Part shown: in pieces, positions 34,274-64,000 of the stretch
Layout: the number at the start of each line of letters is the position of its first letter
Numbering within the stretch: position 1 is the first letter of the stretch
Assembly: GCF_902652985.1 (NCBI RefSeq)
Contig: NC_047024.1
Location: forward strand, 31,930,001-31,994,000
Source of the DNA: Pecten maximus
Lineage: Eukaryota
Reading direction: 5' to 3'
DNA: 64,000 nt
Position numbers and translations under genes: made by a program
The notes under the pieces: generated by a model
Told to the model about the DNA's origin: nothing
Seen by the model: only the letters and a program-made list of their open reading frames with translations
Database searches by the model: none

Positions 34274-34445
34274 GACTTGAAGAAGCTACAAACTGAACTA
34301 ATGAGATAACTCACATTTCGAAGGCGCATTCATTTATTCGGAGCTTAAATATTCGCTCACCATGTAATAAAATTGTTTGCGTCTATTATCATACACAAAT
34401 GTAATGAAAGGATTGTCTTCAGCCATGTTAACGATATTGAGTTTA

Positions 34446-37400
34446 TCAGTACACTTCTTCGTAATTTAGGTAGACTGTCCAAAACAGAAACTGAAATAAG
34501 ACATACGCAATTAGATACAGGATCCGGAAGTACTTCTCCACGACACCAGTGGGAACCGACATGAAGAATTTCGCACCAAAGCTGTTGATCAGGTCGTCGC
34601 TTTCTGATTCTACACTGACCGGACCATCCTTCAATAACAAAAACAAAATATTTTAGAAGGCTGAAAAAACTTTTCCTTGTTATATAACTGCAATGCTGTA
34701 ATGATAAAATGTTTCATTTATCGAATATCTTGATTTTGATGCTTCATTTTTCTTGTTATCTTTGTACAAGTACAAAATAGAAAATGTTAAAATAATAATC
34801 TTGATCAGAGAACTAAAAGCACAAAAAGGAAATATTATCTGATGCATATGGTTTTTTTTTTTCAAATGTTTCACATCTTGGAGAAGTGGGAAATTATGTT
34901 TATATGAAGGTTCAGTCAGTATTTATTTATTTACCGACGGCAAGGTGTTCATTTCGATGAGATCTACATTGCTCCTTTGCTTACTATCCTGGGGATCGCC
35001 TATTCCCCCAACTACTGTGCGAATCTTCTTCTTCATTTCTTCCTGTCGTCTTACTTTATCTTGGAAGATATCCACAGCGTGTACAAATGTATATTCAAAC
35101 ATGGCTACCACAACGAAAAGCAGTGATACCACAAACCACACCTCCATTGCTGATATCACGAACTTGGCTGACAGGAACAACTTCGTTCCCACCTGTTCTG
35201 TGATCATAGCCAGCAGACACAGTGTTCCAAGCTTGACTCTTGAGGACACCTCCGAACGCTCTATCCAAAAACTCAGCCATCCGACAAGCACGATGAAAAT
35301 ACTGGGTAAAAACAAACGTGCTGCGCTACTGGCAAAACTGAATCTTACGTGTACCAATAGTTGTATGCACGAACTATCTACAACTGCAAATAAAATAAAA
35401 AATCTCGTTAAGTACACATATGTACAGTATAACAATTGAGGTTGACTTTATTTTGTTATGGTTTGTATTGCCATTCCTACATATGTAAGTACGTCAAAGC
35501 ACAGGCCTATATTTCGAGGTCCGACCGAAAAGGGTAAAGTCTTCAAATTAGACCGATAACATTAACTGCTTGGACAGGTGATATTCATGGACTGTCCGTT
35601 TCGCCTGTTTAAATTTGGAAGGAAGTAATCAATATGTACCCTTATTGGGTCAAAAACTTAACCTTTTCGGGTGTGATTATGGAATGGCGTAGCAAGATTA
35701 ATATAAGTTGATATAAATTGTTTCCTTATTGTAAAATAAATAAAGTGTTTACATTTACAACGGTGTCAGAGTTCTGTCAAAATCTGAAGGTAGGGTGCGA
35801 TCCGTTTTGTCATCTGCAGTGTCAGTTTCTTGTAAAATCCATATTTTACCAAAACATATAGGGAAATGTCTTCACGTTTGCCTTTTTTCGAATCAGTAGT
35901 GCTTTAACTCCAAAGCTTGGATTGTTGTATTTATGATATTTACGACTTGTGTTTAAGTAGCGAAAAATCTCCCGACACGCAATTTCCGAAACGTGCACCA
36001 ATGTTGCAAATTATTTTAAATTCCCAACACTCTTATAGAAAAACAACTCCAGTCAAATCATTGTAAGATTTACAACGTCAAACGTCTTTCCCATTTTTTT
36101 TGTTCTAGTTGAGAACATTAACAAAACATCTAATATATCTCTGTATGATACAATGGTCACTCAAACATCATATAGCTGCTTGTCAAAATTATATGCTGTG
36201 CTTATAATATCAACGTGTAAATATTGTGTAAAGTACCTGCACTCGTATCTGACGAGCACTTCGTGAACTCCAAAGCATGTTTGGTCACCTCGGGGTTTGC
36301 AAAAGTTACATTGATCTTCGGCTGATGAATGGTGTCCCATTCCATGGAGACTTGGTCGTTTGTATACGAATCTTAAAACAAACAAAAAACAAAAAAACAA
36401 AAACAATATACATATATGAAATGAAACTATTGTAATATAGCAACTAGATTAGTACGGTAGTTTATTAGACATATGCGAATACTTTCCAAGTTACCAAACC
36501 CTCTTGCAATCACAGGCCAAAAAAGATACATACATTTGTACATTGTATTTAAAAAAAAAATACACCATAAAACACTTGTTTTAAATATGAATCATTAAAT
36601 AACACTTAAAAACGGCAAGTGAAAAATGTTTTTTTTTCTTTATAGAACGTTCTAAAACGTCACGTAATATTACAAAAGTTTCAAATTTTGGGGAACTGTA
36701 TGTTTCTATAATACCATGCACTGTCATCAAATTATACAATCGCTATGAAAATGAAGTATAAAATGATAAAAAAGAAAAGAAATTAAAAAAAACCTAAAAA
36801 AAAACCCAATAGAACAAAAAAAAAAAAAAAAGCAAGAAAACGAATTACCATATACAACTTTGAAATTTGAATTTAGAAAATAAAAACACACGTATACCAT
36901 ATGAAATAAATACCCAGGACAATGATGATTTTTTTTAAATCACATTTTTTCAGTGTCTGTACTGCAGGTAGGTCGTAAGAATGATCGTAAGAGGCGACTA
37001 ACTTTGTGGAACATTATCTTTTCTATTCTTTCTGAACAACTTTTTTCTTCCTTAATATCTCCCTGACTACTGCACTATAAAGTAGGCATCAATTCCGTGC
37101 TATCACAAGGAGACAGACACGAATATATCGCAGATTCCCAGAATCTATATAAATTCGCCGCTTGCATGCCTCTCTCACAAAGGAAAGACTGCAGTTATTG
37201 ATAAGATGTTAAAACAATACTAAACCAAGCCTAAGCACCGCACTTTACTAGTAATGTGACTTGGTGAGGTGTCCTGCTGGGTGTTTTTGGCCGTGTGCTT
37301 CAGTGAGATAGCATTACAAACTGTATTTATATGAAAAGCCCTGGACCCGTTTATGATTGAGAGCATTTCGTTAAGAAATTATGTGGTTTTTAACGTTTGT

Positions 37401-40400
37401 TAAAAAATACTCAACAAATACTCACGAATGCGAAACTTCATGAGGCAATCGAACAGACCGTTGGGAAACAGGAAGCCTTTCAACTCACACGCAAGTCCAA
37501 CTGTCATTCTAAAATCACCGAAAGAGAAAATGATATTACCAACATAACTTTGAAATTATCAAATTAATTCTGTAATTGAACTAATAATTTAGCTGTTATT
37601 TCTTTTTATCAAATCAATAAAAACAATCAGAGACTGATTCAAGGAAAATCAAAACTTCTTCCCGAATCAATTTGAAAAAGTAAATTATTTGATTTTCTTA
37701 TTGTATATGCACATTCTATGAAGTTATATAAAGTTTGTATTATTAAATTAATTGATTTAATTCAATCAATTAATTGATTTAATTCAATCAATTAATTGAT
37801 TTAATTCAATCAATTAATTGATTTAATTCAATCAATTAATTGATTAATCTATATAATTTATTTATTTATGTTACGTCCCATCGACAAAGTGAGTGATTTG
37901 GCTCATTGCTAAGTATTTCCAACGATAAAGGCTTACTACATACAAATGTTCCCTCCACTATAGCAGTAGTAAATGCTTATTTAGAAAAAATAAACAAATT
38001 AAGCGATTACTGATAATTTGTATTAAGGGTGAAATGCTAAAAACATACCTCATGCTGTATATCAAAGTTCCGTTTGCCATGAGCCATACGAAACGGTTGG
38101 CCATTGACGAATCGTGGATATGGGAATGTAATTCGTTTTCAACGTAACTCTCAGCTAGCCATATGTTTCCAAAATATCTACTTCGGACAACGTGGTACGT
38201 CTCATTAAAGTCAGAGTTGTTTTCGAAACGATAACTCAGTCTAGGATCATTCCAGATTTGGTACAAGTAAAATGTGAAGTCGGCTTCCGCCTAAGAAAAT
38301 AAATACATAATCCATATACATTCTACAGTTTATGATTTATAGTATAGATGTCGGACATGTTAACATAGTAATTTACAAATATATACAGAGGAATTGATCG
38401 GGTTAAAGTAACGCATTTCTTGCCGGATGGTTTTGGAGAGATAATATATCTAAGTTTTACATTTAACTCAATCAATTCTGTCCCAGCCATGAAATAATAA
38501 CACAAGCGGCTGAAAACAAACGTCGAATAGAGTTGCCTACATTCGAGGCTCTTTTGCAGACCCACTCGCTGCTATTCATTGTAAGCAGTTTTTTTCTTTC
38601 TTCCTAATGCTTTTTTTGACACTGCTTCGCTTTTGATGAGCGCTAGCCCCTCGGAAGAAAAGATAGTGCCATGTCCTCTGGACGAAACATCTTTATGAAG
38701 TGTGGGTAAGTACCAGATGTTTGCATTTTTGCAATTATTTTGAAAATAAGTACTGTTATTTAGGCCTTACACAAAGAGTTGGCAATTAAATTACAGTACT
38801 ATGAGTAAGCAAGCAAGCAAGCAACTAAATGATACGGAATTCCGTGATGAAATGAAAATCAAAATTGTGTTACTTTTCCCCACAGGATACAAGATCATAC
38901 TGTTTGTCTAGCAGTGATATGCCTGTATATATGTACATCAGTATGTAGTGAACGAATTTGATTTGATTTCGTGATCGTGTTAACGTTAACAGAGTGAAGT
39001 GGCTCATTACTATGCTCAAATTATATTATAGATAGAAACTGAGTGACAAATAATATAAAATAGAATAACAAATTATGCACCTCATGTGAATTAAAGACAT
39101 ATTGAATTATCTACATTTTGTACAGCGATTTATGTATATATGTTTAGATGTCTGTACCATTTAGTTCACAAGCGCGCTTAATATATCAGGCCGCTTATAA
39201 ACCATCGGTCTTTATTTTTTTTTAATTACCAATTTCAAATAAAATAAAGGAACAGCATAGATTAGGTAAATTCATTGTACAGTCAAATAAACAGCGAACG
39301 TTATGATATGTGTTTAGCTACATATATATTGCAAATTTATTGATGTTCTCATAGTGGTAAAATTATTTGATCAAAGTAATAAGTATCACCATATATATGT
39401 GAAACAATGTAGATTGATCTCTATATTATGTACCTTATGTGATATTCATATCATGTATGCTCATGTTGATCTCCATACGTTTTTTTTTGTATTTTTACAA
39501 TATGAAGTATTATGTATTATGTTTGTTCAAAACTGATTGGCTGTCAAGCCAAATGTAATAAAATGAATTGAATTGAAACAGACGTTTCGCTGACCTGGGT
39601 ATAGATGACGGTATACACGTTGCTAAACACATTTATCAAATCTATCAAAGATGATATTGACGTTTAAATAGTGCAGACTCGACAAAGACAAAGTGGACGG
39701 CTTGCAGTTATACTCTTCAGACAGTGATTGAGGTAGGTAATAAACATTGCAGAGTTAAGTTTGATGTTCATGCCGTTGAAGACTTCAAGTGATCATCATA
39801 ATGTACAGCAGTGCCATTCGATGACATTAAGAGAAGGAATTTTAGATATAAACCACAATTATATGAACAGAGTGTTACCTCACAAATTAAGTCAAATGTT
39901 AGGCAACATTGTATATAACGGTAGTTGAATTGAAAGTAGATAGATTTGGCCAATACATGCTTGAGTAACATAGAAGGTATTCAATACATAAGTGCGATTA
40001 CGGTTTACATTATTTTGATTAAAACTACCAAGGCTCTAATATAAAAATGTGTTTTATGTTGTGTCATCCAACCCATCCAACTTCCCGTTTTTTCACAAAA
40101 TCAAGGTACTTAGTAAATGATAAAGCAATAACAGCATTTTGATTTTGGTCGATATATGTTTATATCGACCTGGGGAAATTATTGACTTTGTCCTCAGCCC
40201 ATATTTTCTTTGGTCGATATAACCATGTATCGACCCCCTCAAAATGCTTTACTTGTATAATATAAACATTTCCGTAAACACAAACCGTATCTATGAACCT
40301 CATCTGGGTCATATGTATAGTGATGCGGACATTTGTTTTGTTACCTGGAAAACAAACGAGAAACAACATATACAATATATATATATATATATATAATTTA

Positions 40401-42610
40401 TCTCGTTTAGGAGATACATTGAATTGTGCTACAACGGCTGTAAATAACTAACTACCGGTAGGTGTTCAGGGTTATGACAAGTCTCAACCTACGTTACAGT
40501 ATGCAGTAATTGCACATTTGAGTTACTATGTCAGTACACGAACAAGACTCAATATAGCCTAGACATTGATGGTATTTTAACAATAATCACCTACATTATA
40601 TAGACCGAAACTAAAATCTGAAACAGGTATATACATGTATAAATGTAGCAACTGCCACAAGGATATAACGTTTTTAAACGATGACACGATGATTAGTGAC
40701 GTTAAACTAACAAATCTACCTAACATAAATGAATCACAGATTCGATACATTATCTCAAATCTTGAACCAATTAAATATCTTATGTAGAACACGCTTTGCC
40801 GGATTTCGGAAAGGTATTTCGTACTTACAAGTTTTGCTACACTATTTTTAAAATGTAATTCCAAATCGTTGTGCAGTGATGATATCAAAGTTTTTGTTTA
40901 TCTCGATATAATCTCGTTCTTAATAACATATCTTATATATTACAATGTATGTCTTGTAAATTATCTTTTGGAAATATACTATTTTATGTACAGTGCATTT
41001 ATAATCAGATACAGGTTTGATTTTGATGATACAAGGTTTTAGACGAGTGTCACAAGTGATAGCGATCCCCTCGCATTACACAACACATTTATACTTGCGC
41101 ATCTTGTTCCTGTAAGAGGTGTTTAAAGTAAGAAGACAACTAGGAAAAATCTTTACCCTCAACTTGTTCGAGATATTGCTATGGTTACTCCGTTTCTCAA
41201 GTTTCCTGAAATTCTGTTGAAAAATGAACCTTTGTGACCGTTGATGAAGTTAAATTTGACTGAATTTAAGTTAGGACAATAACTATGCAAATAAGGGAAT
41301 GCTGCATATGAAAAGCGAATTTGTCCAACAGATAGGAATGATAAACTAATGTATCAGGTATCATTAAATCTCGTTGAGGCATGGTGTTATGAGAGCTTTG
41401 ACAATGATAAATGTGAGTGAATTAACCTAAGGGCAATATGAAACCTGTACTCGTATAGGATATTGCGATAATAAAATCATATATAAAGTTCCATGAAATT
41501 CCGTTGAGTTTCGGATATAAACTTTTGAGATTGGTGACAAAATCATATTTGAGTGAGATAACCTAAGGGCAATAACTCTGTATAGAGGAGAGAGCCAGCT
41601 CTGAAAATCAATTCCATCGGAGATGTTGCCATGATAAATTTATGTAACACATTTCATGAAGTTCCATTGAGAAATGAACTCGTGAGAGATAGCGCTAACA
41701 AAATGTGTAATACACTAGCCGAATCCTAGACGACGCAATCGTTTGATATTCTACGTATCATATATAAATGTTTATGGAACAAGCTCATGATATGCCTTAA
41801 ACTCTGTTCGATAAATTTCTATTTCGGCAAACGAATTGTCGACTTGGACGGTATGTGTTTCACAACAATCGTGACGTCACAATAATAATATTATACTTTT
41901 GAGTCATATTATTGATTGCGAAACATATCAGGTTTGTGTTGAAATGTACAATCCTGAAAATACGCCACATGAGAACAATATGTTATACCATACCAAACAA
42001 TGTATTAAGATAGTTTACCGAAATGAAAATCATCTGAACGTAGCAGGTTTGTCAATGTGCGTTGCATGTACAAAATGTGTGACTTACATCTTCTGAGTAA
42101 AATCATTTTTTTCTCGAAGAGAAACATTCATGGATACGATGAGACAACTGTTGAAATCAAATCGACATCCTAACAAAACAGATTAAGCAACACCATGAAA
42201 TGGGTATATATGAGGTTGTGTGAGTGTCACGTAGTCTGGTGGACGCGTTTCTCATGTACCTATGGGAAATTAATCTAAAAAAATATACATTTTACCTGTA
42301 TGATAGAAGGGTGGCTTAGACTGGTCTTTCTGCAACATTTTATCTATTTCATGTCGCCTGAAAAAAATATAATGGAATTGATATCAGCGATACTTTTGAA
42401 AAAAAAATTGACCAACAATTCATTTAAAATTATTTCAAACAGATTAAAAAAATATATGACAGGTTACAATGGTTTACTCTATATAATAGAAATACTAACT
42501 GAATAATATTATATAAATACGTACTGTGCTGGTGCTAATTCAGCTTTGATGCTGCCATATGTGGCTATCGCAAGTAGCATCCAACACGTTTTCAATGATT
42601 TGGTAGCCAT
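34446..42610 (-). CDS. Divergent Cys-loop ligand-gated ion channel subunit (GlyR/GluCl-type), paralog A, 8 coding exons, 432 aa
   Basis: Exons 42610-42525, 42357-42296, 40344-40286, 38290-38049, 37508-37426, 36371-36237, 35383-34935 and 34628-34446 splice in frame. Signal peptide MATKSLKTCWMLLAIATYGSIKA. QIWNDPRL. C-x13-C loop CELKGFLFPNGLFDC. Second loop-C Cys pair. M1 LPSIFIVLVGWLSFWI, M2 SRVKLG, M3 ..AMFEY, M4 EKYFRILY..FW. Confidence 0.9.
37745..37848. repeat. 22-bp quasi-palindromic AT tandem repeat (~4 copies)
   Basis: Unit AATTAATTGATTTAATTCAATC, in the intron between exons 4 and 5 of paralog A. Confidence 0.9.
41420..41740. mobile_element. Degenerate HINE-like relic
   Basis: Two copies of AACCTAAGGGCAATA..TT.CATGAA.TTCC.TTGAG, spaced ~137 bp apart. 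Confidence 0.45.
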
Positions 42611-44574
42611 GATAACCGGCTGTTGTCAACAAAATTATGTCAAGTATATAGGTCTGGAATGAAACACAAAAAGACGAAATGTTTATTAGTGAACATTTCA
42701 TTGGTATTTATTCCTGCACTCAAATATTTGATGTTTGAGTATACTACATCCAAAGTCTTTAACATTGCTGTAGTATTTCAACGGTTTTTTTTTAATTAAT
42801 GTTATGAGATATAAGAACACGTCACAAAAATGTCTTGGCAAAAAGCAACTTCATTTTATGTATATGTTTATATATGTGTGTGAAACGAAAAGCTTTATTA
42901 ACCTTGTTCTTGAAGCTCTCTTCAGTACAAACCATAGTGTCTCTGTATTTCTACAATCTTTGTTTGTATTCGCTTTATATTCGTAATTTAAAACAGGTAA
43001 TCTGCAGCTAATGAAATAATTTTATCATCAACAGTCTTGGAAATGGTAGCCACGTTGCTATTTTTTACTTTAAGTGATTAGATATCGGACAATACAACAT
43101 CCATAAGTTAATGTATCTAAAATATAATTTTGAAACTGAAACTGAAATATAAAAAACCCTTTACTTTAACTTGCGGTAATCATATCTCGTTAAGATCGAC
43201 AAACGATGTAACACTGACGTCGATCGGTGGATATTGATCAGCATTGACTATTAAGAAGTTTATCAGCAAGGGCATGTACAAAATTGTATGCAACATCTAT
43301 CATTGAGTGACATGAAATAGAAAACGTCAATTAACAAGCACACATCAAACTAAATTATAACATATTCTTGTTGGGAAAAATTCCAAATCATCAATCTAGG
43401 TTTTACTTACCCTAGGTAGACCATGTCTCATAGTTGTAAACAGGGAATACATACGTATATCACTAATATAACACCTGCACATTAATGACCGCACAGGGAT
43501 ATCGGTAGCATCAATCATTGGTAGTTTATGAGGTACTTAAGGGCTTTGTGCACGCTGTTCATCAGAGTTGTACAATATCAGGGCCCGATGTGTACCTGGC
43601 TGTAATTAACCGTGTCCATACAGTAAGTAAGGAAACATGAGTGACATAGCAAAACAGAAAGTACCAAAGCTCATCCAAACCTTCGTGAAAATATATGGGT
43701 TATTAAAGACTACCTTATATATTGCTACACCATCTAAATCGAAAAACAAATGTGTTTAGTTTTATTGCACTGGGCTATAATAATTAAGTAAATTAAATAA
43801 CTAAGATTATATAGCTTACCTAAATACCCTAACGTTGAGAAATGTACGTCTAAACTATACTATGCTATATATAACTCACCTAATCACCCTTACTCCGACA
43901 AATGTATGTCTTATAAAATCTCTTTCGGTCATATCATATAACTACCTATCAAAGAAAGAGATTAATTTAACCTGATGGAGTTAACTTATAGCATAGAGAA
44001 ATCAAAGTTTACATAGCTCAGATGAACTCTGAAACATTTGAAAAAAATCTTAACTATCACACATACTATATCATACTGTCTTTTCCTAAGCGCAAATGCA
44101 TAAAAGCTGATAGCGCTCGACTTATAGAATAGATAAATCGAAAATTACATAATTCGCCTAAATACCATAGCCTCTGGAAATGGTAATTTCATTTATGTCA
44201 TTTGATTGGAAACAAGTATAACACTAGCTTATGTATGTAAACTAGGGTAAAGATGTGCATGCAAACAACCAACGTGACATAAGTCGTGGTCAGAGTTCAT
44301 AGAATCATGTTAAAATCGTGTTAAAAAAGTAAGTATTAAGAAGTAATAAAGCACACTTGCTCGTTACAATTGAATTAAATAAAACAAACTTACATCAATA
44401 TGCATACGTCAGCATAAACTGTAACACAGAAATTACAACCACAGGTATCGCAGCCGTGCTATTAAAATTAATTATTTTTTTTGTTATACACAATAATATC
44501 ATATCAATGAGATTTCAAGGAGTATGTAAGACTAATTTATAGAGTGGTATGTTTCCGCGACTCGCGTAGCAAAT

Positions 44575-45775
44575 AGAACTGATGCTAGTGTGTATTGTGA
44601 GGCTTGCGGAGTCAGAACTGATGCTAACGTGTATTGTGAGATTCGCGGAGTAAGAACTGATGCTAGTGTGTATTGTGAGATTCGCGGAGTAAGAACTGAT
44701 GCTCGTGTGAATTGTGAGATTCGCGGAGTAAGAACTGATGCTAGTGTGTATTGTGAGACTCGAGGAATAAGAACTGATGCTAGTGTACATTGTGAGACTC
44801 GTGGAGTAAGAACTTATGATAGTGTGTATTGTGAGATTCGCGGAGTAAGAACTAATGCTAGTGTGTATTGTGAGGCTTGCGGAGTAAGAACTAATGCTAG
44901 TGTGTATTGTGAGGCTTGCGGAGTAAGAACTAATGCTAGTGTGTATTGTGAGGCTTGCGGAGTAAGAACTGATGCTCGTGTGTATTGTGAGATTCGCGGA
45001 GTAAGAACTAATGCTAGTGTGTATTGTGAGATTCGCGGAGTAAGAACTGATGCTAGTGTGTATTGTGAGACTCGCGGAGTGAGAACTGATGCTAGTGTGT
45101 ATTGTGATATTTGCGGAGTAAGAACTAATGCTAGTGTTTATTGTGAGACTCGCGGAGTAACAACTAATGCTAGTGTGTATTGTGAGATTCGCGGAGTAAG
45201 AACTAATGCTAGTGTGTATTGTGAGACTCGAGGAATAAGAACTGATGCTAGTGTACATTGTGAGACTCGTGGAGTAAGAACTTATGATAGTGTGTATTGT
45301 GAGATTCGCGGATTAAGAACTAATGCTAGTGTGTTTTGGGAGACTCGTGGAGTAAGAACTAATGCTAGTGTGTATTGTGAGGCTTGCGGAGTAAGAACTG
45401 ATGCTAGTGTGTATTGTGATATTTGCGGAGTAAGAACTAATGCTAGTGTTTATTGTGAGACTCGCGGAGTGAGAACTGATGCTAGTGTGTATTGTGATAT
45501 TTGCGGAGTAAGAACTAATGCTAGTGTGTATTGTGAGGCTTGCGGAGTAAGAACTGATGCTAGTGTGTATTGTGAGATTCGCGGAGTTACAACTAATGCT
45601 AGTGTGTATTGTGAGACTCGTGGAGTAAGAACTAATGCTAGTGTTTATTGTGAGACTCACGGAGTAAGAACTAATGCAAGTGTGTATTGGGAGACTCGTG
45701 GAGTAAGAACTAATGCTAGTGTGTATTGTGAGACTCGCGGAATAGGAACTGATGCTAGTGTGTATTGTGAGAACC
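44575..45775. repeat. 39-bp minisatellite (~30 copies)
   Basis: Unit GTAAGAACTGATGCTAGTGTGTATTGTGAGATTCGCGGA. Produces the 13-aa-periodic ORFs on both strands. Confidence 0.96.
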
Positions 45776-47692
45776 GTTAAGAAAAACAGCTAATGCATAA
45801 TGCCAGAGTTTGTGGGAATCATGAAGTAAGTAAAAGTATGTATTATAAAAATCCACGAATTAGAAGTATGTACTGTTGTAGTCCAAGAGAAAGTAGAACC
45901 AATGATGCTATGTATTGTAGGAATCTCTGAGAATGCTAGCATATTTTGTGGAAATCTCGTAACAAATATATCTAATGCATGCATATATTGTGGAACTATA
46001 GGAGTACTGGAATGCAGACCTAATGCTAATGGGCTTCGTTGAGACTCGCGTAAGGAAGAAGAACTTACCGCAGTTTGTGTGTGGAGTTCACGAAATAAGC
46101 TAATGTTTACATTTAAAAAAAATTCCTTGAGTACATATATGTAAGTAGAGTTACTGCTAGCAAATATTGAAGGAATTGCACTGTTAGTTGTTACCTAATG
46201 TTAATGTGTATTGTAGGGTTTCCACAAAAGGTTTTGTTTTATTTTTTAACGTCCTATCGACAGCCAAGGTAGCAGTGTACAGTAAAAATGCCCAATTCTG
46301 AAAAATATGGCACATGTTTTAGATATGTTAACATTGCCAGTCAACCCTACATATTACCTATAATAAAGTATATATATTTGTAATCTGTACAACATTTGCT
46401 ATTTTAATACAGCGCTGAAGGATAACTTATTTTTTCTGTGTTTTTAGAGCTGTGAATACCATGGTACATTGTAACAACTTCAAAATTGCTTCAAAATTGC
46501 AAAATATTATGATATTTGACCCAAAATGACACAATTCTCTACACATTTTTTTTCTGAAACCTATTTAAAATTAAATATCTCAATACCAAAGACAGAATTA
46601 ACCTTGTTTTGACAGAAGTTGTACATTAAGTTTTCCCGCTATCTTACCTTGACTATGAGCTTCCGTTTTTCGCTGTAGACAAAACTAAATTTCCTGTGTA
46701 AACAAACTTTCGTAAAACCCGAAAATTGAAAATCCGGAACCAATTTATTTACTTTAGTTTTAATAAAAGTGAAGCCTGTATGTACTACTTCATAATGAAT
46801 ATACCAATTATAGTGTACATTTATTTTAATTTTTTATTTTATGCATATCATAATACAGGAGTTATTTTCTATTAACACTCAGATTGAATAAATATATTTT
46901 GTACCTAGTGACTTTTACATCAATAATATGAGACGGAAATGGCTGGAACGTGACTTGGTTTCATTACTTACCATCTGTTTAAAATAGGAAATTATGTCCC
47001 GTAACATAAACAATATAAAAACAGGGATTACTTGCTATTCTCCTTTTGCACAAATGTGAAATTGTGTAGGTGCATGTACTTTTGATTACAGCGATTGTAT
47101 TCATTGTGTACGATGTGTACATATAGTGGTGTAGTGCTTGTCTTCGTTTTCCTGTTGATTTAAGGGGTTTATTGTCCTTGCAATAGCAGGGCCATATGAG
47201 ATTGGGTGTCAAGGATATACATATAAAAGAAAACAGGGAAAACAAAAATCCCAAAGGTTGGTACATACTAGTTGTAGACTGCCTCTTTTTCATGATACAA
47301 CTGTATCGGCATGGTTAATTTCTTTTAAGTTCAGAGAAATGGCTCAAATAACTGCCACCGCATTGTCGGAATACACCCACCATATATATGTTTGCTGTAT
47401 AAGGCAATGACGGAAAACAGCTGTAGTTTGGAATCTGAGCACGTGCGTCAATTCGACTGACCTACTTTAAAGTGAAACAACGTTTAAAAGGCGAACATAT
47501 TTCTGTCATTTTTGACATCGTTTCACTTCAAAATGATTGTTTTGATGATTTCTTTTCATGACTGTTGCAGAATGAATAGAATACATGGCCAAGGCTCGCC
47601 ACTTTTGTCTTTATTTACCCTCGCCAAAGTACAGCTTATATTTTAAGACACTGACCATGTATTCTCTATGTATGAATCGGTATATATATATA

Positions 47693-48172
47693 TTGCGGAC
47701 ATATTTCTCCACCTAGTCAGTTGGAATCATCAGGATATATATTCAACGCTATCGTTGTAATGGAATTCTTTAAAATTACGTGACTCACCTAGAAATAAAA
47801 AGTGCAATGTCTGAGAATAGATTAAATACGAGATATCTAATGGTAATTAAAATAACACATTGAACAATGGTTCATTGAATTTCTACACTGATATTCCATG
47901 TTTTATATCAGCATGGTATCGGATACATATCAAGCCAATATTGTCCATTCAATTTGGTTGGTAGGTCTGGCCCTTCTGTCTCCATTGGTGTCCATATTAG
48001 CATTTTATTCTTTACGACTCTTGTGTTTTTAGCTCCTCCTGCAGTCTCATTTTCTGTTGAAATGTGGCAACAGCACATACGAAAATGTAGGCAAGCATTA
48101 CAGCAACAAAAATAATAACAATATAAAGTACCATATGTCAAATGATACCACTTTAAAATTAACCGACGGGAA
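47693..48172 (-). pseudogene. Partial unprocessed duplicate of the 3' end of Cys-loop paralog B
   Basis: Reads SVNFKVVSFDIWY, against PVNFKVVSFEVWY in paralog B. Retains the homologous last intron and part of the last exon (GTGGAGAAATATGTCCGCAAT). Has stops, indels and a donor GT changed to AT. Confidence 0.85.
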
Positions 48173-49619
48173 TGATTGAAGAGCCAGATAATTAGTCCAA
48201 CTGCATGTTGCTTGGAAGAGGCGACTAAAAGTGACCCCGCCCTGCAGAATAGGATATTGTTTTCTGATTTTCAGGAACCGCTGCCTCCATCGCAATACCT
48301 GGGTTATTCTTTTTATTTGCTGGTGTTTCCATGACACTCATATCTATTGCGGAACGTTTTATCGCGTAAAGTCAACGATAATGTAAAGCGTCATTTTCAA
48401 CGAAAATTTGTGTTCCTGTCATTTTATAACTTTATTCTTTCCAACAAGTTGACTCCGATGAGAACGGTACACTGAACAAATTCTCAATACAATCGTGTTG
48501 TTTATGTGTGTTTTATTCATCATTTGCTGATTTTCTGTACCACTTGATTAACTTTCATTATTTGTGACTTACAATGTAAATCTAAAGCTACTAGGTAATT
48601 AATGTTGTACATGTCTAGAAAAAAAGTGTAAGTTCATAATGACACAGAAAAATGTAACCGACAGATGACGTACATCCTGCGGTCGTAGCCAATTGTATTG
48701 ATTTTTCTGTTTCTGTAAGTGTAAATTATAACATCCTCCACCTGTCGTAAAAATTCCAATTAGCAATGTGATGCATAAACAGTGTCGTAAACAAAGCTGA
48801 ATGTTTCATAATATAAAAAAGTGATATATACTGTAATTACTTTCCAACAGTAAATACAGATTTTTTTTTACCCAGCATGATCAATTCAAAGGGAACGAAA
48901 ACATACCAATGCAGTTCATGGATTGTGACATAGGGACAGATTAAGAAAAGGAACCAGGATTTTTCATCAGAAGCAATAGGCGATACTGGTATTAAAGCTT
49001 TAATAAGCACACACATTTTTCAGCAATACAATGATAAGGTATATTAATTTGTTCTTATTTGCAACCAAAAGACATACTTTATACTAAACTACTAGCAATA
49101 TATTATCTACTGGCTTGAAAACCAAGGATTTGCATATGTGTCTTACCTTTCATTCTTATCATAGCCGAACATAAAAACATGACCTGAACTAACACGTGTT
49201 TACACTTAGTTTAAATGATAATTTCATCAATAATGAACTCGATGTTTTGGAATATGAAGACATAAATAGCAACGGACTGTATCTGGTACGCAGGTAAGAT
49301 GAAAGAATATATTAATCAAATGTCCATGATACATATATGTTTCACATTACAAAACTCATTCTATAAGTTTAGTGGACATTTTAAACAATTATAAAAATCG
49401 CCATAAAAGAGTTTCTGTATGCATAGATACGCGATATCAGTTAGCATACCAACCTGAGGACTGGATTAATTTCATTATTTTACTTATTTACATATCTGTC
49501 CTTTGGAGGGTCCCATTGTGAAAGTGATTCCTTCAATGATGATATTTGACTGGAAGTATGCGTTTGGTAAGCGGTACCCTATGCTAACGTAGTCCAGGCT
49601 CAAAGTTGTGTCACTAGTA

Positions 49620-52600
49620 TCAGATATCAATTTCTTCATAGTTCAGAGCAATGGTCCAAAATAAGAACTGGAACACAATATATGAAACGGCATACACAAT
49701 GCGGAAATATTTCTCCACCTGGCCTGTTGAAATCATCATGATGTATTTTGCACCGAAGCTGTTGTTCTTTATCACGTCCACGCTATCGTTTGTATTGGAA
49801 TTTTTACCATTTACGGGACCCTCCTGGAAATAAAAACGTGCGATGTCTGAGAAAAGATGAAATTAATTATTAAAACAGCATATTTGATTAACTTCATTAC
49901 TGGTTCGTTTTATTTCCACATTGATATGCAATGTTTTACTCTTAAATAAAAACGCGTGGTATCACATACATACCAAGTCAATATTGTCCATTTCAAGTTG
50001 GTTAGTAGAACTGGTCCTGCTGTCTCCATTGGTGTCCATCATACCGTCTGATTCTTTACGATTCTTTTTCATTTGTTCCTCTTGCAGTTTCATTTTCAGT
50101 TGAAATGCATCAACAGCATGTACGAAAGTGTACTCAAACATTGCAGCAACAACAAATACTAACGACATAATGTACCAGACTTCAAATGATACCACTTTGA
50201 AATTAACTGGCAAGAAGAATTTCGTGCCGACTTGTTCCGTGATCATTGCTAACATAGATAAGGTTCCAAGCTTAATTCTAGCCGAGACTTGGTTTCGTTC
50301 AATCCAGAAACTTAACCACCCGACTAATACAATGAAGATACTTGGCATGAATATACGTACAACATTGCTAGCAAAACTGACCTTGATGCTGACCTTGAGC
50401 TCCAAACACGAACTATCGGTCACTGAAATAGAATAATTATATCTTCGATATTAATAGTAGCTTTAAGGATTGCGATCATTCAGAGTCCATACCAACTGAA
50501 TTTGTATTGCCTTATAAATAAATATGTACAATATTATATGTAAATAAGTGTTAGTAAACATATGACCGAACTATTAGTATTGAACCTGTATAAAATAAAA
50601 ACAGATCTAAAGTGAAAACACAATATGCACAACTGTAATTTATTTCGCTACTTTATTTACGTTTAATCAAACTTGACTTCTTATGTATCAATTCAAGGAA
50701 TGTTTTATCCGACACCTTATGCCTGCATTACCAAATTGGTAATTACTATTTTTATATCCACATTTCCTTTTGTCTTTTAATAATTTTACCTGCACTATTG
50801 TCTAGTACACACTGCAGTGCTTCCCATTTATCTAAGGACACTTCCTCATTGTCGAAATCCACAGGAAGCATCGGTTGCAGATCAGTATCCCATTTCAATG
50901 ATACTTTGTCTTTTGTGTACGAATCTAAATGTATAAGAAAACACGTTTTTTTCGAGCAAGGATATACACCTCTGAATATTTCACTGCTCATTACCTTATA
51001 TATATTTTCTTCATAGGTTGTAAAGATTAGTAATTTTCAGCAGAATTTTATAGTTGATAAGAAAAAGTATGCATAAGGACGTTAGTACATGATTTACTTG
51101 TTTCCGTATCATCCTTTATTCTTTCATATGTACATGTTCCATTTACCTCGACAAATACACTATAAGCTAGATATATTCCAATAAGATGACTTAAATCATT
51201 TTCATTGGTTGATAAGATTATTTAGTTATAAATCGGTTGTTGAGTATTTCAAAGGAAAGTAATGTCACGTAATAGGGAATATGCTACCATTTCTGTTCTA
51301 TTTGTTCCCATATTAGTTTACTGAAAACAGCTCTACTTAATATCTTATAAAGATACTTTATTATTAAGTAGAATATACAATTGAAAATAACGTGTTATCT
51401 TATTCTTTGCATGCACATTAATATATTTTCAATGATTGAAAATGATAAGTTACTCTTTTTTATCATATTTATTCTTTGCATGCACGTTTACATATTTTAC
51501 TTCAATATTTAAAAATAATAAGTTATTCTTTTTTATTATATTCTTTGCATGCATATTAATGTACATTAACTTCATTGACATAAAGCTGTTGATAGGACGT
51601 TAAACAATAATAAAACAAACCAAACGAAATATATAACTTAAGAAGTTGGAAATTATATTATTTTCTTTTTTATCCTATTCTTTGCATGCAGATTAATATA
51701 TATAACTTCCGCCGAATATATCTGGATAGTTCTTAAATGTTATAACAAAAATAACTTGGTTACACACAATACTTGCGTTTGTAAGCAATACTCGTTCTTA
51801 AATCATATTAACCATATTGGTATTCAATGCTAAAAAAACATTGGTTAATATACATTCGGAACTGATTCAGGAAGATATCCTCTTCGTTCAAATTTAATTC
51901 CTTCGTTTAAAATGAAAATCGAAAAATTTTTACCGACGAAAATAACCGGCTATGTATAAACCACAAATCAATAGTAACTGGTTAAAAAGTGAACGAAGCA
52001 TATAGCCTAGAAATCGATACAAATCACTATTATAAAATGTGTAGGGAATTCTCGGTTGTAACTTGAAGTGATGTTGGTCATTTAACATAAAACACCTTCG
52101 TAATGTATTTTACTTTTCGAAAAAAACTTAATTTGTTGTGAAAAATATAGGTTGCATTTCAATCATGAAAGGGATTTATCTGTATTGTTTTGAGGTCATC
52201 ATAGGAAAAATTACATAAACAAACAAATAAAAATACGTCATTACTGCCACTTCATTATGAGAACGACCACAATATGCGTTTGATCTTTATTACACATTGT
52301 AGACTAGACTATGACTACGTAAACTTACGAATTCTAAACTTTAGCCTGCAGACAAATAGAGCATTTGGGAAAAGAACACCTCTCAAAGTACATGCAAGTC
52401 CAGCTGTGATTCTGAAAAGTTGAAAATAGATGATTTATCATATGTATATAACACGAAAGTACGTTTAATAACATGAATTGAGATTGTTCACATGGTTTCT
52501 TATACACTTTTTTGTATTTTGAAGAAATGTTCATAAATCAAGGTACGTGAATGAGTCTCTATTGAATTGCGAAAGTCAGATATATAGACAATGTGCTGAA

Positions 52601-55600
52601 ATGAAGCGTACCGCATGCTGTACACGAGTGTCCCATTGGAAAGGAGCCAAACAAAACGGTTAGACATGGTCGAGTCGTGGACACGGGAACGTAGCTCATT
52701 TTCAATATAGCTCTCAGCGAGCCATATGTTGTCGAAGTATTTACTGCGGACAACGTGGTAGTCTTTAATACCATAATCGGTATTATTAGCAAAGGGGTAC
52801 TTTAGTCGCGGGTCATCCCATACTTGATAATAGTAGAATGTGAAATCAGCTTCAGTCTGCAAATATATCATTTATTTATATAGCGTTTACATACAACAAA
52901 CTTCGGGAGGACCATCAAAAGAAATTTATAGATACACTCTACAATATATGAATGAAGTATAGTAAAACATCACTAAACGACCATTGCATTGTAATAGTTA
53001 ACAAATATATCAACAACAACAAAATCATTTACATAAACAGATTATATGTAACATGTCTATAAAGGTCGCTCTCAGGAGAAGGTAACTTATAGTTCATATA
53101 CACTGAATCGTGTTTGGAACCACAGCTTATGACCCTTATTACACAAATTACTGTTAAAAGTTTAATTTAGTGAATGTTCGATTGTAATACTGATAGCTGT
53201 TTCTGTGTATATATTATAGAGTATACGACACGTAATTTGATCTACTAACCCGCTCCAAAAATCTCATCTCCGTCATATAGATGCTCATTTTAATATCGGT
53301 CTTGTTACCTGCAGAATTACACAAACAATTTTTTTTTCATTTTGATAATCGGTTCACAATATCTTAATGACGCTACATCGCCGACAACTTATACACTGAC
53401 TCTATTTACCGAAATGGCAAACAATGTTGAGGAATGTATATCTTTAGAAAGGCATAACAATTATAATAATAAAAGCCTCGCTTATTATATATCAACATAC
53501 AAAATGGAAGGAAGCCCGATATGATTTCTTCATGATGCAGTTAATTGGTTAAGAAGATGCAGCAGAAGACGCTTACTCTTCCGGGTCACCTGGTCTTATT
53601 CGTATCTGTTCTCAGCAGTCTCCCTGCAAATTTGTATTTTTATTTATACTTTGACCTCGTTTTCGGTTCGAATTATTTATTTTATTTTAAGGGTTCAACG
53701 TCCTCGCAACAGCCCAAGTCATATGAGGGTGTCAAATGAGGGTTTCAGGAATAGACCTAGAGTAAGAAAACAAAGCACATAAAGACAAGGGAGTGGAGCA
53801 AAGAACATTTTAGATCCAAAGTGTTGCAAAGGGGGCAACGGATCAATTGTATTCTCTTAAATGTATTCTGAAGACAAGGAAGAAAATCCCCGAGTCTTGA
53901 GTCGCCCTCTACGATATCTTTGAAGGTAAATGATAAAATTAGAAGCTCAAACTTTTCGAGGGTTTTACTAGTAATATTGTTAAGTATACGTTTGGTATTG
54001 TTGTAAAATATATAACAGCTTGGATGTATATTTATTTATTTATTTATTACTATTATCTATTTTGTAGTAAGTATTACTTATTTGAAATATCATACTGATT
54101 CTAGGATAAAAATAAAAACCTATGTTCCTTGTATTTGTAATCAATAACATTTATTTAGGTGAAGGAACATGGCGCCAGTCCATTTGGGGATAGCAATACA
54201 AAGTTGGACCTCGGATCTCGTGTTTCCCTTTTATAAAGCTGTATTTATTTATGGTCCATGGAGATTTGAAAAACATCACTATTTAACACTCAGGAGAATG
54301 TGGCAGCAGGTCTGCACTGAAAATGCTTATGTCATTTGAGTTCCAGAACACCTCTAGATGTGATTGGCCAATTATGATGATGATGATGCATGGCAACACA
54401 CCTACACAATATATAATGTTCTCCGGATATTGTGAAATAACTTCGTCGAGATGATAACTGATTACGCAAGCAAAGGGTATGACATTGTAATTGATGTTCA
54501 CAACCAAGCAGGTCAAGAATTACAGACATCGCTATAAATAAGGTATGTACGATTTATCAGGTGTTCATGAGAAAAAATAGTAAACCTGTGTCTTTTTTAT
54601 GACAAATAATCATAAATGTATGCTTTTGTTTAATTGTGTGTGCTCTCGACGGCAATATGTGTTAACACGTACAAATCATAGTTAGTATGGATATGCTGGT
54701 ATTTCTCGTTGTTTGATGATTACTAATATCTAAAAGATAAAAAAAAAATGGCATCTTTCTGAATAGAATGAGAGTTAGATATAGTAGAGCCACACTCTAA
54801 ATACAACAAACATCAGGTTGTTAGACTTTGGTACAGTAGAGCCACACTCTAAATACAACTAACATCGGGTTGTTAGACTTTGGTACAGTAGAGCCACACT
54901 CTAAATACAACTAACATCAGGTTGTTAGACTTTGGTACAGTAGAGCCAAACTCTTAATACAACTAACATCGGGTTGTTAGACTTTGGTACAGTAGAGCCA
55001 AACTCTTTATACAACAAACATCAGGTTGTTACACTTTGGTACAGTAGAGCCAAACTCTTAATACAACTAACAACATGTTGTTACACTTTTATACAGTAGA
55101 GCCAAACTCTTAATACAACCAACATCAGGTTGTTACACTTTTATACAGTAGAGCCAAACTCTTAATACAACTAACATCAGGTTGTTACACTTTTATACAG
55201 TAGAGCCAAACTCTTAATACAACTAACATCAGGTTGTTAGACTTTGATACAGTAGAGCCACACTCTTAATACCACTAACAACTAAATACGTCAACAAGAA
55301 AGAAAAAAAAAATACAATGTATATTGTCTCGAGAAAACACTTGATAAAGCTCGGAATAATCATGTGTTTTGGCTACACAGGGCAGTATGAAAAATAAGTG
55401 TTTGTTCTTTAAAATACAGAGTACCGGAACATATTGGCGACAGGGGCAACATAAATAGTGAACTAGTGTTAGCAACGAGGTATTGTTGATGATAGAGGCC
55501 TCATTAGGACGGAGTAGATAATATGGTAGAAATATAGAGCATATAAACGATACACTGACTCGTATAAACGTGAAGGAGGTTTTACCTGTGTGGTAAAATG

Positions 55601-56080
55601 GGGGGTTGGAATGATCCTTCTGGAGCATGGTTTCTATTTCCTGTCTCCTATAAAAAATAAGATTTAGGTATATGAAGTAATCCTAGATGAAATTGTAAAA
55701 ATATATGAATGAGCAGCGCATTATAATTATAAAAGTATAAAACAGGAGAAGAGCAAGGTTCATATTACTTGGAATATACACTAGCAAAATAAGAGTGTTT
55801 ACAATTACAAAATTGTGTATACTTCAGTTATTGCGTTAAATGTGTTTATAATAATTGCACTTTAATACATCTATTTTTTTAAATGTATAACTTTGCTTTG
55901 TCTATCAGTAATTGTATTGCCTGTGGTTATTTAGAATTAGTATATTTCATAGACAAGATTAAATCTTAAAGCTAATTGTACTCACTGTGAAGGTGTTAAG
56001 GAGTACACATTTCCAAACAATATTAGCGCTGTGATGAAGATGTACCGCAACATGGTTTGTGTTCCCGGCATTATGTCCAT
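49620..56080 (-). CDS. Divergent Cys-loop ligand-gated ion channel subunit (GlyR/GluCl-type), paralog B, 8 coding exons, 443 aa
   Basis: Exons 56080-55986, 55647-55586, 53308-53250, 52856-52612, 52411-52329, 50924-50790, 50422-49974 and 49823-49620 splice in frame. Five of the six internal exon sizes (62, 59, 83, 135, 449) are identical to paralog A. Cys loop CTLRGVLFPNALFVC. M2 SARIKLGTLSMLAMITEQ. Confidence 0.9.
54783..55270. repeat. 52-bp minisatellite (~9 copies)
   Basis: Unit AGTAGAGCCACACTCTAAATACAACTAACATCAGGTTGTTAGACTTTGGTAC. Confidence 0.95.
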
Positions 56081-61507: not shown

Positions 61508-64000
61508 GGGGTCCATACCTCCCTTACCAGTAGATTGGGGGTCCATAACTCACTTACCTGATGTTTGGGGCCCATACCTCCCTTACCTGTTGATTGGGGG
61601 CCAATTCCTCCCTTACCTGTAGATTGGGGGTCCATACCTCACTTATCTGTTGCTTGGGGGCCCATACCCCCCTTACCTGTTGATTTGGGCCCATTCCTCC
61701 CTTACCTGTAGATTGCGGGTCCATACCTCACTTACCTGTAGATTGGGGGTTCATACCTCCCTTACCAGTAGATTGGGGGTCCATACCTCACTTACCTGTT
61801 GATTTGGGCCCATTCCTCCCTTACCTGTAGATTGGGGGTCCATACCTCACTTACCTGTAGATTGGGGGTTCATACCTCCCTTACAAGTAGATTAGGGGTT
61901 CATACCTCCCTTACCAGTAGATTGGGGGCCCATTCCTCCCTTACCTGTTGTTTGGGGGCCCTTACCTCACTTACCAGTGAATCGGGGCCCTTACCCCCTT
62001 ACCTGTAGATCGGGGGTCCATACCTCCCTTACAAGTAGATCGGGGGTCCATACCTCACTTACCTGTAGATCGGGGGTCCATACCCCCCTTACCTGTAGAT
62101 CGGGGGTCCATACCTCCCTTACCAGTAATTTGGGGGCCCATACCTCCCTTACAAGTAGATCGGGGGTCCATACCTCCCTTACCAGTAGTTTGGGGGTCCA
62201 TACCTCCCTTACAAGTAGATCGGGGGTCCATACCTCCCTTACCTGTAGATCGGGGGTCCATACCTCACTTACCTGTAGATCGGGGGTCCATACCTCCATT
62301 ACCTGTAAATTAGGGGTCCATACCTCCCTTACCAGTAGATCGGGGGTCCATACCTCCCTTACCTGTAGATTGGGAGTCCATACCTCCATTACCTGTAAAT
62401 TAGGGGTCCATACCTCCCTTACCTGTAGATTGGGGGTCCATACCTCCCTTACCAGTAGATTGGGGGTCCATACCCCCCTTACCTGTTGATTGGGGGTCCA
62501 TACCTCCCTTACCTGTTGATTGGGAGTACATACCTCCCTTACCTGTTGATTGGGAGTCCATACCTCCCTTACCTGTTGATTGGGAGTCCATACCTCCCTT
62601 ACCTGTAGATTGGGGGTTCATACCTCCCATACCTGTTGATTGGGAGTCCATACCTCCCTTACCTGTAAATTAGGGGTCCATACCTCCCTTACCTGTAGAC
62701 CGGGGGTCCATACTTCCCTTACCTGTAGATTGGGGGTTCATACCTCCCTTACCAGTAGATCGGGGGCCCATACCTCCCTTACCAGTAGATCGCGGTCTGT
62801 ATTATTTACTTTTTATTAATGACTTAAGGTACTTGTCTCCAGTTATGTTTATTGTTTTGTCCACCCCCCTGAATACTCTGATTGTGTTTTTGTTGTTAAA
62901 ATTAATGTTTTCGGATGCTTTTCACCAGTTACGGCTACTGTTTTGTTCATCCTCTATAACAATTAGTTACGTATTGTATATATGTGTATGTTGATGCTTC
63001 TATGTTATACTTATGAGCCGTAAGGCTTCAAGTTGAATAAACTAAACTAAACTAAAACCAGTAGATCGGGGGCCCATACCTCCCTTACCAGTAGTTTGGG
63101 GGCCCATACCTCCCTTACCAGTAGTTTGGGGGCCCATACCTCCCTTACCAGTAGATCGGGGGCCCATACCTCCCTTACCAGTAGATCGCGGTCCCTACCT
63201 CCCTTACCAGTAGGTTGGGAACCATTCCTCCCTTACCTGTAGATTGGGAGTACATACCTCCCTTACCTGTTGATTGGGAGTCCATACCTCCCATACCAGT
63301 AGATTGGGGGTCCATACCTCCCTTACCTGTTGATTGGGAGTCCATACTTCCCTTACCTGTAGATTGGGGGTTCATACCTCCCTTACCAGTAGATCGGGGG
63401 CCCATACCTCCCTTACCAGTAGATCGCGGTCTGTATTATTTACTTTTTATTAATGACTTAAGGTACTTGTCTCCAGTTATGTTTATTGTTTTGTCCACCC
63501 CCCTGAATACTCTGATTGTGTTTTTGTTGTTAAAATCAATGTTTTCGGATGCTTTTCACCAGTTACGCCTACTGTTTTGTTCATCCTCTATAACAATTAG
63601 TTACGTATTGTATATATGTGTATGTTGATGCTTCTATGTTATACTTATGAGCCGTAAGGCTTCAAGTTGAATAAACTAAACTAAACTAAAACCAGTAGAT
63701 CGGGGGCCCATACCTCCCTTACCAGTAGTTTGGGGGCCCATACCTCCCTTACCAGTAGTTTGGGGGCCCATACCTCCCTTACCAGTAGATCGGGGGCCCA
63801 TACCTCCCTTACCAGTAGATCGGGGGCCCATACCTCCTTTACCAGTAGATCGCGGTCCCTACCTCCCTTACCAGTAGGTTGGGAACCATTCCTCCCTTAC
63901 CTGTTGATTGGGAGTACATACCTCCCTTACCTGTTGATTGGGAGTCCATACCTCCCATACCAGTAGATTGGGGGTCCATACCTCCCTTACCTGTTGATTG
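61508..64000. repeat. 30-bp minisatellite running off the window, with a 634-bp higher-order duplication
   Basis: Unit GGGGGTCCATACCTCCCTTACCTGTAGATT. Interrupted by two near-identical ~260-bp inserts. Confidence 0.96.
62798..63056 (+). mobile_element. Short retroposon 3' end (LINE-like tail) inserted in the minisatellite; duplicated at 63432-63690
   Basis: Ends GAGCCGTAAGGCTTCAAGTTGAATAAA followed by (CTAAA)3. The second copy differs at only a few positions. Confidence 0.7.

Follow-up and report, generated by a model that had tools for sequence, protein, structure and literature searches.

What opens the Cys-loop receptor subunits that two neighbouring and highly divergent genes encode in the king scallop Pecten maximus, and do these genes amount to a sensory system of their own? 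The pair, here called genes A and B, lies in a stretch of 64,000 nucleotides (nt) of contig 10 (31.93-31.99 Mb, within the 918-Mb P. maximus assembly), which we refer to as the window and whose numbering is used for all positions. A sequence-only reading of this window had presented them as members of a tandem expansion of anionic-type receptors with a rebuilt ligand-binding site, in parallel to the chemotactile receptors of cephalopods. We find it likely, if not assured, that A and B encode functional subunits and belong to a small, old and bivalve-restricted clade of orphan Cys-loop receptors, which comes from the anionic side of the superfamily, that is, the side of glycine receptors (GlyR), gamma-aminobutyric acid (GABA) receptors of the GABA-A type and glutamate-gated chloride channels (GluCl). 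On present evidence, it is not a new sensory system. The proteins themselves are already in public databases under automatic names, and a limited literature search found no paper that describes the clade.

Both genes are intact and in the same orientation, as the sequence-only reading had it, each with eight GT-AG exons on the minus strand and an open frame of 443 (gene B) or 431 residues (gene A). The translation of gene B (56080-49620) is exactly P0001, a protein named 'glycine receptor subunit alpha-3-like [Pecten maximus]', whose spliced mapping defines exon 1 with the signal peptide (55986-56080), exon 2 (55586-55647), exon 3 (53250-53308), exon 4 with loop D YYYQVW and loops A and E (52612-52856), exon 5 with the Cys-loop CTLRGVLFPNALFVC (52329-52411), exon 6 with loop B, loop F and the start of loop C (50790-50924), exon 7 with membrane segments M1-M3 (49974-50422) and exon 8 with M4 and the stop codon (49620-49823). 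In gene A (42610-34449), exons 2-8 were placed by tblastn with P0001 and by reading of splice sites, and the resulting protein equals P0155 from exon 2 on. Its signal-peptide exon (exon 1, 42525-42610) combines an ATG, a hydrophobic stretch and a phase-compatible GTACGT donor of phase 2 with a peptide similar to the start of the orthologues in Ylistrum and Argopecten (P0154, P0156). This joined model served local analyses only, database searches being run with single exons, P0001 or P0155. Exon phases match between the two genes, sizes of 62, 59, 83, 135 and 449 nt are identical, and the minus-strand open reading frames (ORFs) at the exons of both carry PF02931 (Neur_chan_LBD, in exon 4) followed by PF02932 (Neur_chan_memb, in exon 7), an order that is likewise precomputed for P0001 and P0155. 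As for other possible beginnings of gene A, isoform X2 (P0155) uses an alternative first exon at 43424 on the minus strand, with MVYLG and a GT donor and without a signal peptide. An ORF that starts at 47293 (47190-47293, minus strand, MKKRQSTT...) encodes a hydrophobic stretch together with an 'SLTP' motif that recalls the ends of signal-peptide exons; it was rejected as gene A exon 1 because it offers no usable donor, and may be a remnant of the first exon of a copy since lost, or a coincidence.

Gene A is transcribed and spliced as modelled at introns 3, 4, 6 and 7. Read contigs from three studies (four public runs) were examined over 34420-40400; the spliced ones among them, 1.1-1.4 kb long, are joined exactly at these four introns, with GT..AG ends. 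Exon 2 (42296-42357; tblastn to P0001, canonical splice sites) is read by loose contig ends past exon 3, and exon 3 (40286-40344), defined by its splice sites, by the joint 38289 to 40285 (intron 3). Exon 4 (38049-38290), which encodes loop D YLYQIW, W.DPRL, loop A WLAESY and loop E, has joints on both sides. Exon 5 (37426-37508; Cys-loop CELKGFLFPNGLFDC and start of loop B) is bounded by the joint 37508 to 38049 (intron 4), and between exon 6 and exon 4 the contigs have 83 letters, as many as this exon. The joint 35383 to 36237 (intron 6) links exon 6 (36237-36371; loop B HSYT, loop F and first half of loop C) to exon 7 (34935-35383; end of loop C and M1-M3), the latter having PDB matches as well, while the joint 34627 to 34934, which leads to exon 8 (34449-34628; M4 and stop codon), occurs in four runs and three studies. 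Contig depth is ~40 in exons (exon 7 included) versus 3-6 in introns, and the three differences between transcript and genome, all in exon 7, are synonymous without exception. Three intron stretches of gene A (35691-35746, 37014-37052 and 39517-39574) show high contig depth, with contigs that run into unrelated sequence; these are probably fragments of dispersed repeats transcribed elsewhere.

Constraint tells the same story of function for both copies. The proportion of synonymous differences between A and B is saturated (pS 0.82) and that of nonsynonymous differences is low (pN 0.25), so A and B are old duplicates under purifying selection, and decay is excluded for both of them. For the comparison of evolutionary rates by domain that the sequence-only reading had suggested, pN was used and no dN/dS ratio, owing to the saturation of synonymous sites between paralogues. 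By region, pN amounts to 0.22 (ectodomain), 0.17 (M1-M3) and 0.40 (cytoplasmic loop). The ligand-binding domain is thus not evolving notably faster than the pore domain.

Where do these subunits belong? The AlphaFold model (predicted local distance difference test score, pLDDT, 81.7) has the standard fold, with a beta-sandwich ectodomain and four membrane helices, and its best structural matches are GlyR alpha-1/alpha-3, the GABA receptor RDL, GABA-A and GluCl (Foldseek template-modelling score, normalised to the target, 0.72-0.86 against the chains listed, at 18-26% identity). The top full-length PDB sequence match is RDL (E 9e-39), with RDL, GlyR and GABA-A about equally distant, and all listed PDB sequence and structure matches are of anionic type, bar one chimera of a proton-gated channel and GlyR. 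The anionic origin proposed from the letters therefore stands. In a maximum-likelihood tree of 36 sequences (quick search, with the Shimodaira-Hasegawa-like approximate likelihood ratio test, SH-aLRT, as support, and matches of the M1-M3 exon as references), the family forms a clade (SH-aLRT 92-99%) outside vertebrate GlyR alpha, mollusc GlyR-like proteins, GluCl and a GABA-beta sequence, and the stem that separates it from the canonical sequences measures 1.3 + 0.53 changes per site. Hence, rather than being short-branched inside a characterised clade, it sits on a long and supported stem outside all those sampled, and its identity to canonical GlyR-like proteins is 20-27% versus the 37-41% that these keep with each other across phyla. 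Within the family, A pairs with B, and C, Pinctada and D join in turn (SH-aLRT 89-99%); Mercenaria is sister to all, a join that involves long branches. Types A, B and C each hold one sequence per sampled genus, which places the A/B duplication before the split of the compared scallop genera.

The family is small. The M1-M3 exon and the main ectodomain exon, each used on its own to search the P. maximus genome, found the same four loci, after which identity drops sharply to 25-34%. These are A, B, P0159 (same contig, 15.73 Mb) and P0173 (contig 6, 25.63 Mb), all with eight exons of nearly equal sizes, and only A and B are in tandem, so the claim of a tandem expansion does not hold. Restriction to a lineage, by contrast, is supported by HMMER and protein searches, which find the family in bivalves, mainly scallops. 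An exhaustive HMMER search with the M1-M3 exon, against 1.84 billion cluster representatives, gave only three matches below 1e-30 and ~8 family-like clusters. Orthologues of types A, B and C are present in Argopecten irradians, Mizuhopecten yessoensis and Ylistrum balloti, and D-type members are found in Ylistrum and Pecten. In Mizuhopecten and Argopecten, the A and B orthologues share a scaffold or chromosome. Beyond scallops, there is a partial related protein in the pearl oyster Pinctada imbricata and a very divergent protein in the hard clam Mercenaria mercenaria, with Ser at -2', Lys at 2' and Glu at 14' and without the Cys-loop Asp. Further fragments that match the family are P0002, P0003, P0004 and P0015. 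A word-index protein search, made first with one protein and then with a profile of the family, yielded scallop proteins and a single fragment only; its sensitivity is limited, as it missed the Pinctada fragment, and the range given here rests mainly on the HMMER search. A protein-atlas search returned generic anionic clusters only. A single Mercenaria chromosome encodes P0112, P0163 and P0164, almost identical proteins named 'glycine receptor alpha-2-like', whose Cys-loop lacks even the FP motif and which share Ser at -2', Lys at 2' and Glu at 14' with the family; they may represent a recent local expansion of a sister lineage.

In the binding site, the family departs from its relatives. Residues were read from the HMMER alignment of gene B to solved GlyR alpha-3 chains and from the 36-sequence alignment, and HMMER, MAFFT and structure-based matches give the same alignment. 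Both alignments agree with the sequence-only reading on what is kept: W.DPRL, the C-x13-C loop (no family member varies in its Cys residues or in the Phe and Pro of its FP motif), the loop-C disulfide (C220/C232 of P0001, invariant in the family-only alignment and nearly so among the 36 sequences) and M1-M4; loop E Ser/Arg and loop B Tyr are kept too. They also agree on what is replaced. In loop D, F63/L64/R65 of GlyR become Y-x-Y (YLY in A, YYY in B), the Arg being Tyr in every family member; in loop B, ESFGYT becomes RIHSYT (E157 to R, F159 to H); and loop C, CSSDTSAVVDSSC in A and CVLDNSAVTDSSC in B, holds no aromatic residue at all. The GlyR contacts F63, R65, E157, F159, Y202, T204 and F207 read Y, Y, R, H, S, V and S in types A to C, and WxPD of loop A reads W-L-A/V-E. 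The outcome is a pocket made of Tyr, Tyr, Tyr, of Arg-x-His-Ser-Tyr and of a loop C with Asp-x-Ser-Ala-Val-x-Asp-Ser-Ser. Although overall identity between the paralogues is only 28-60%, loops A, B, C and D vary little or not at all among them. In GlyR, GABA-A and GluCl, the loop-D Arg and the loop-B position are determinants of the binding of amino-acid agonists, and removal of this Arg in a GluCl abolishes glutamate potency (PMC4338433). Since these determinants are gone, classical activation by glycine, GABA or glutamate is unlikely.

The elements that link the site to the pore are changed as well. The Cys-loop Asp (FPxD, D148) is replaced by Ala or Gly, and the pre-M1 Arg (R218) by Val, Phe, Gln, Lys or Ile, in 12/12 family members, while each is kept in 23/23 canonical sequences; this pair is typical of the superfamily without being strictly definitional. 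In the pore, Pro at -2' has become Ser (Ala in type D), 2' is Lys (Ser in type D) and 14' is Glu (Asp in the Pinctada fragment). Instead of P-A-R, the entrance has S-S-R in A and S-A-R in both B and C, with the 0' Arg kept and no Glu at -1'. Leu at 6' is not distinctive, several canonical mollusc GlyR-like proteins having it too.

How might such a channel work? From these residues, the subunits would assemble as pentamers conducting anions (0' Arg, no -1' Glu, 2' Lys) and would be opened by a stimulus other than classically bound glycine, GABA or glutamate, as the loop-D Arg has become Tyr, the loop-B Glu Arg and loop C non-aromatic. The sequence-only reading had already suggested another ligand, and the part of this suggestion that concerns the loss of the loop-D Arg and the loop-B Glu holds across the family. 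Because the replacements are almost invariant across the four paralogue lines, the family would probably recognise one conserved ligand or stimulus and not a diverse chemical repertoire. With both the Cys-loop Asp and the pre-M1 Arg gone, coupling from site to pore would have to be rebuilt. A bolder reading, to which we give distinctly less than even chances, is that of a new functional class of anion channel, with a site of reversed charge, a novel ligand and a pore signal that dispenses with the Asp-Arg pair. In this reading, the reversed-charge layout consists of an Arg moved to loop B, a Tyr for the loop-D Arg and an acidic and non-aromatic loop C; its Arg on the principal face recalls, by analogy only, the relocated arginines of lophotrochozoan GluCl.

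Why would this matter? The names under which these proteins are stored vary from one orthologue to the next (GlyR alpha-1, alpha-3 or alphaZ1-like; GABA rho-1, rho-3, alpha-6 or beta-like; GluCl-like), which betrays automatic annotation, and their attribution to glycine, GABA rho, GABA alpha-6 or GluCl receptors is unreliable. Cys-loop channels rank among the most thoroughly studied receptors, and the Cys-loop Asp/pre-M1 Arg pair and the loop-D Arg are treated as near-universal in the way they work; here is a clade that replaces all of them together and has a ring of Lys at 2'. With four genes and one pocket design, it is a compact test case for how binding and gating can be rebuilt (if the new-class reading is true, it is a natural experiment in the gating of these channels), and it may hint at a signalling molecule of bivalves that has yet to be connected with an ionotropic receptor.

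Several points weigh against two functional subunit genes of an orphan clade and have to be set beside the evidence above. (i) The identity of the four runs as RNA is a guess from the index, their samples having coded names that give no tissue, although the spliced contigs argue for RNA. (ii) The read contigs cover exons 2-8 of gene A only. (iii) The tree, with supports from a quick search, was built without GABA-A alpha, gamma and rho, without histamine- and pH-gated clades and without an outgroup. (iv) The loss of the Asp-Arg pair could mean that the subunits do not gate alone. This last point leads to a rival explanation, which we regard as unlikely while ranking it above the others: subunits that do not open on ligand alone, being modulatory or structural partners of other channel subunits (A and B perhaps of each other), or else constitutive, ion-sensing or pH-sensing anion channels. 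That no family member has the Cys-loop Asp or the pre-M1 Arg speaks for it, as do the changes in WxPD and at -2' Pro, the maintenance of A and B on one scaffold or chromosome in Mizuhopecten and Argopecten, and the His and acidic residues that line the pocket loops. The very strong conservation of the orthosteric loops is most easily explained by a ligand, however, and each paralogue keeps both faces of the site, so that homomers are possible. The nearest known counterparts to a proton-sensing variant would be the pH-gated chloride channels (mite SsCl, insect pHCl), which are Cys-loop channels of anion type gated by something other than an amino acid and match the M1-M3 exon with E ~8e-14; they are not closer to the family than GlyR, and a proton-sensing role here is a guess from the His and acidic residues in the pocket.

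A lineage-specific chemosensory family, born by tandem duplication and pocket remodelling and deployed in sensory epithelia such as tentacles and mantle edge for the detection of chemicals in the environment, strikes us as improbable, even though a remodelled pocket without transmitter contacts, restriction to bivalves, and two genes in tandem with a further duplicated fragment are what it would lead one to expect, and a Cys-loop channel can turn into a chemoreceptor, as is seen in the chemotactile receptors (PMC10338036). The parallel with the latter, which in the sequence-only reading rests on a large tandem expansion, breaks down at several places: a genome of 918 Mb holds only four genes, orthologues exist in the other scallop genera sampled, and the pocket loops are conserved among the divergent paralogues rather than diversified, in an ectodomain that does not evolve notably faster than the membrane domain. 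Cephalopod CRT1/CRB1 do resemble A and B in being mollusc Cys-loop channels without the transmitter-binding signature (PMC10338036), but their origin is nicotinic and of cation type. Alpo4 from Alvinella pompejana and the orphan nicotinic-like expansions of lophotrochozoans (PMC10338036, PMC6896357) are Cys-loop receptors with no identified agonist too, but are nicotinic-like, often intronless and in families of at least 100, whereas the present family is GlyR-like, with eight exons and four members. The work found on the diversity of mollusc Cys-loop receptors deals with such nicotinic-type expansions (PMC6896357, PMC13174522, PMC10338036). Finally, that A and B are ordinary receptors for glycine, GABA or glutamate, whose odd residues stem from an alignment artefact or from a fast-evolving pocket unchanged in function, seems to us very improbable. 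Their NCBI names say as much, and the likeness to vertebrate GlyR alpha-1/alpha-3 and mollusc GlyR-like proteins, the best sequence and structure matches, is real, as it extends from fold and domain order to the Cys-loop, the loop-C disulfide, W.DPRL, loop E Ser/Arg, loop B Tyr, 0' Arg, 9' Leu and 13' Thr. Set against this are the inconsistency of those names, the agreement of three alignment methods, the lower identity to GlyR-like proteins than among these, the loss of agonist potency that accompanies removal of the loop-D Arg in a related channel (PMC4338433), and the replacement of F63/R65, E157/F159 and Y202/T204/F207 together with the Cys-loop Asp, pre-M1 Arg, WxPD and -2' Pro, with Lys at 2', in proteins that fall outside the GlyR clade. 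Insect RDL, vertebrate GABA-A beta/rho/delta and nematode or arthropod GluCl are equally good matches with anion-type pores; they are no closer than GlyR, the family lacks their loop-D Arg, and the sampled GluCl and GABA-beta sequences lie across the long stem.

The partial third copy that had been reported next to the two genes is real, but it is only a 3' fragment derived from gene B with a broken translation. This pseudogene fragment (47686-48163, minus strand), which runs from within exon 7 through intron 7 into exon 8, sits between genes A and B, ~1.4 kb downstream of B, and is interrupted by stops and frame shifts. By blastn, it matches gene B over 436 nt (76% nucleotide identity) and over 55 nt (82%) and has no match to gene A. 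As it carries intron 7, it arose by segmental duplication, followed by decay, and not by retroposition. The spacer between this fragment and gene A contains a 39-bp minisatellite (44575-45772; 30.7 copies, 89% matches), which gives long artefactual ORFs on both strands. Elsewhere in the window, three adjoining minus-strand ORFs (4998-6402) resemble a fragment of a non-LTR (long terminal repeat) retrotransposon reverse transcriptase, the minus-strand ORFs at 23295-26200, including a Ser/Pro-rich exon of 248 residues, belong to an unrelated gene, and two minisatellite-like arrays with repetitive ORFs (61977-62489 and 63215-63628) occupy the GC-richer end of the window.

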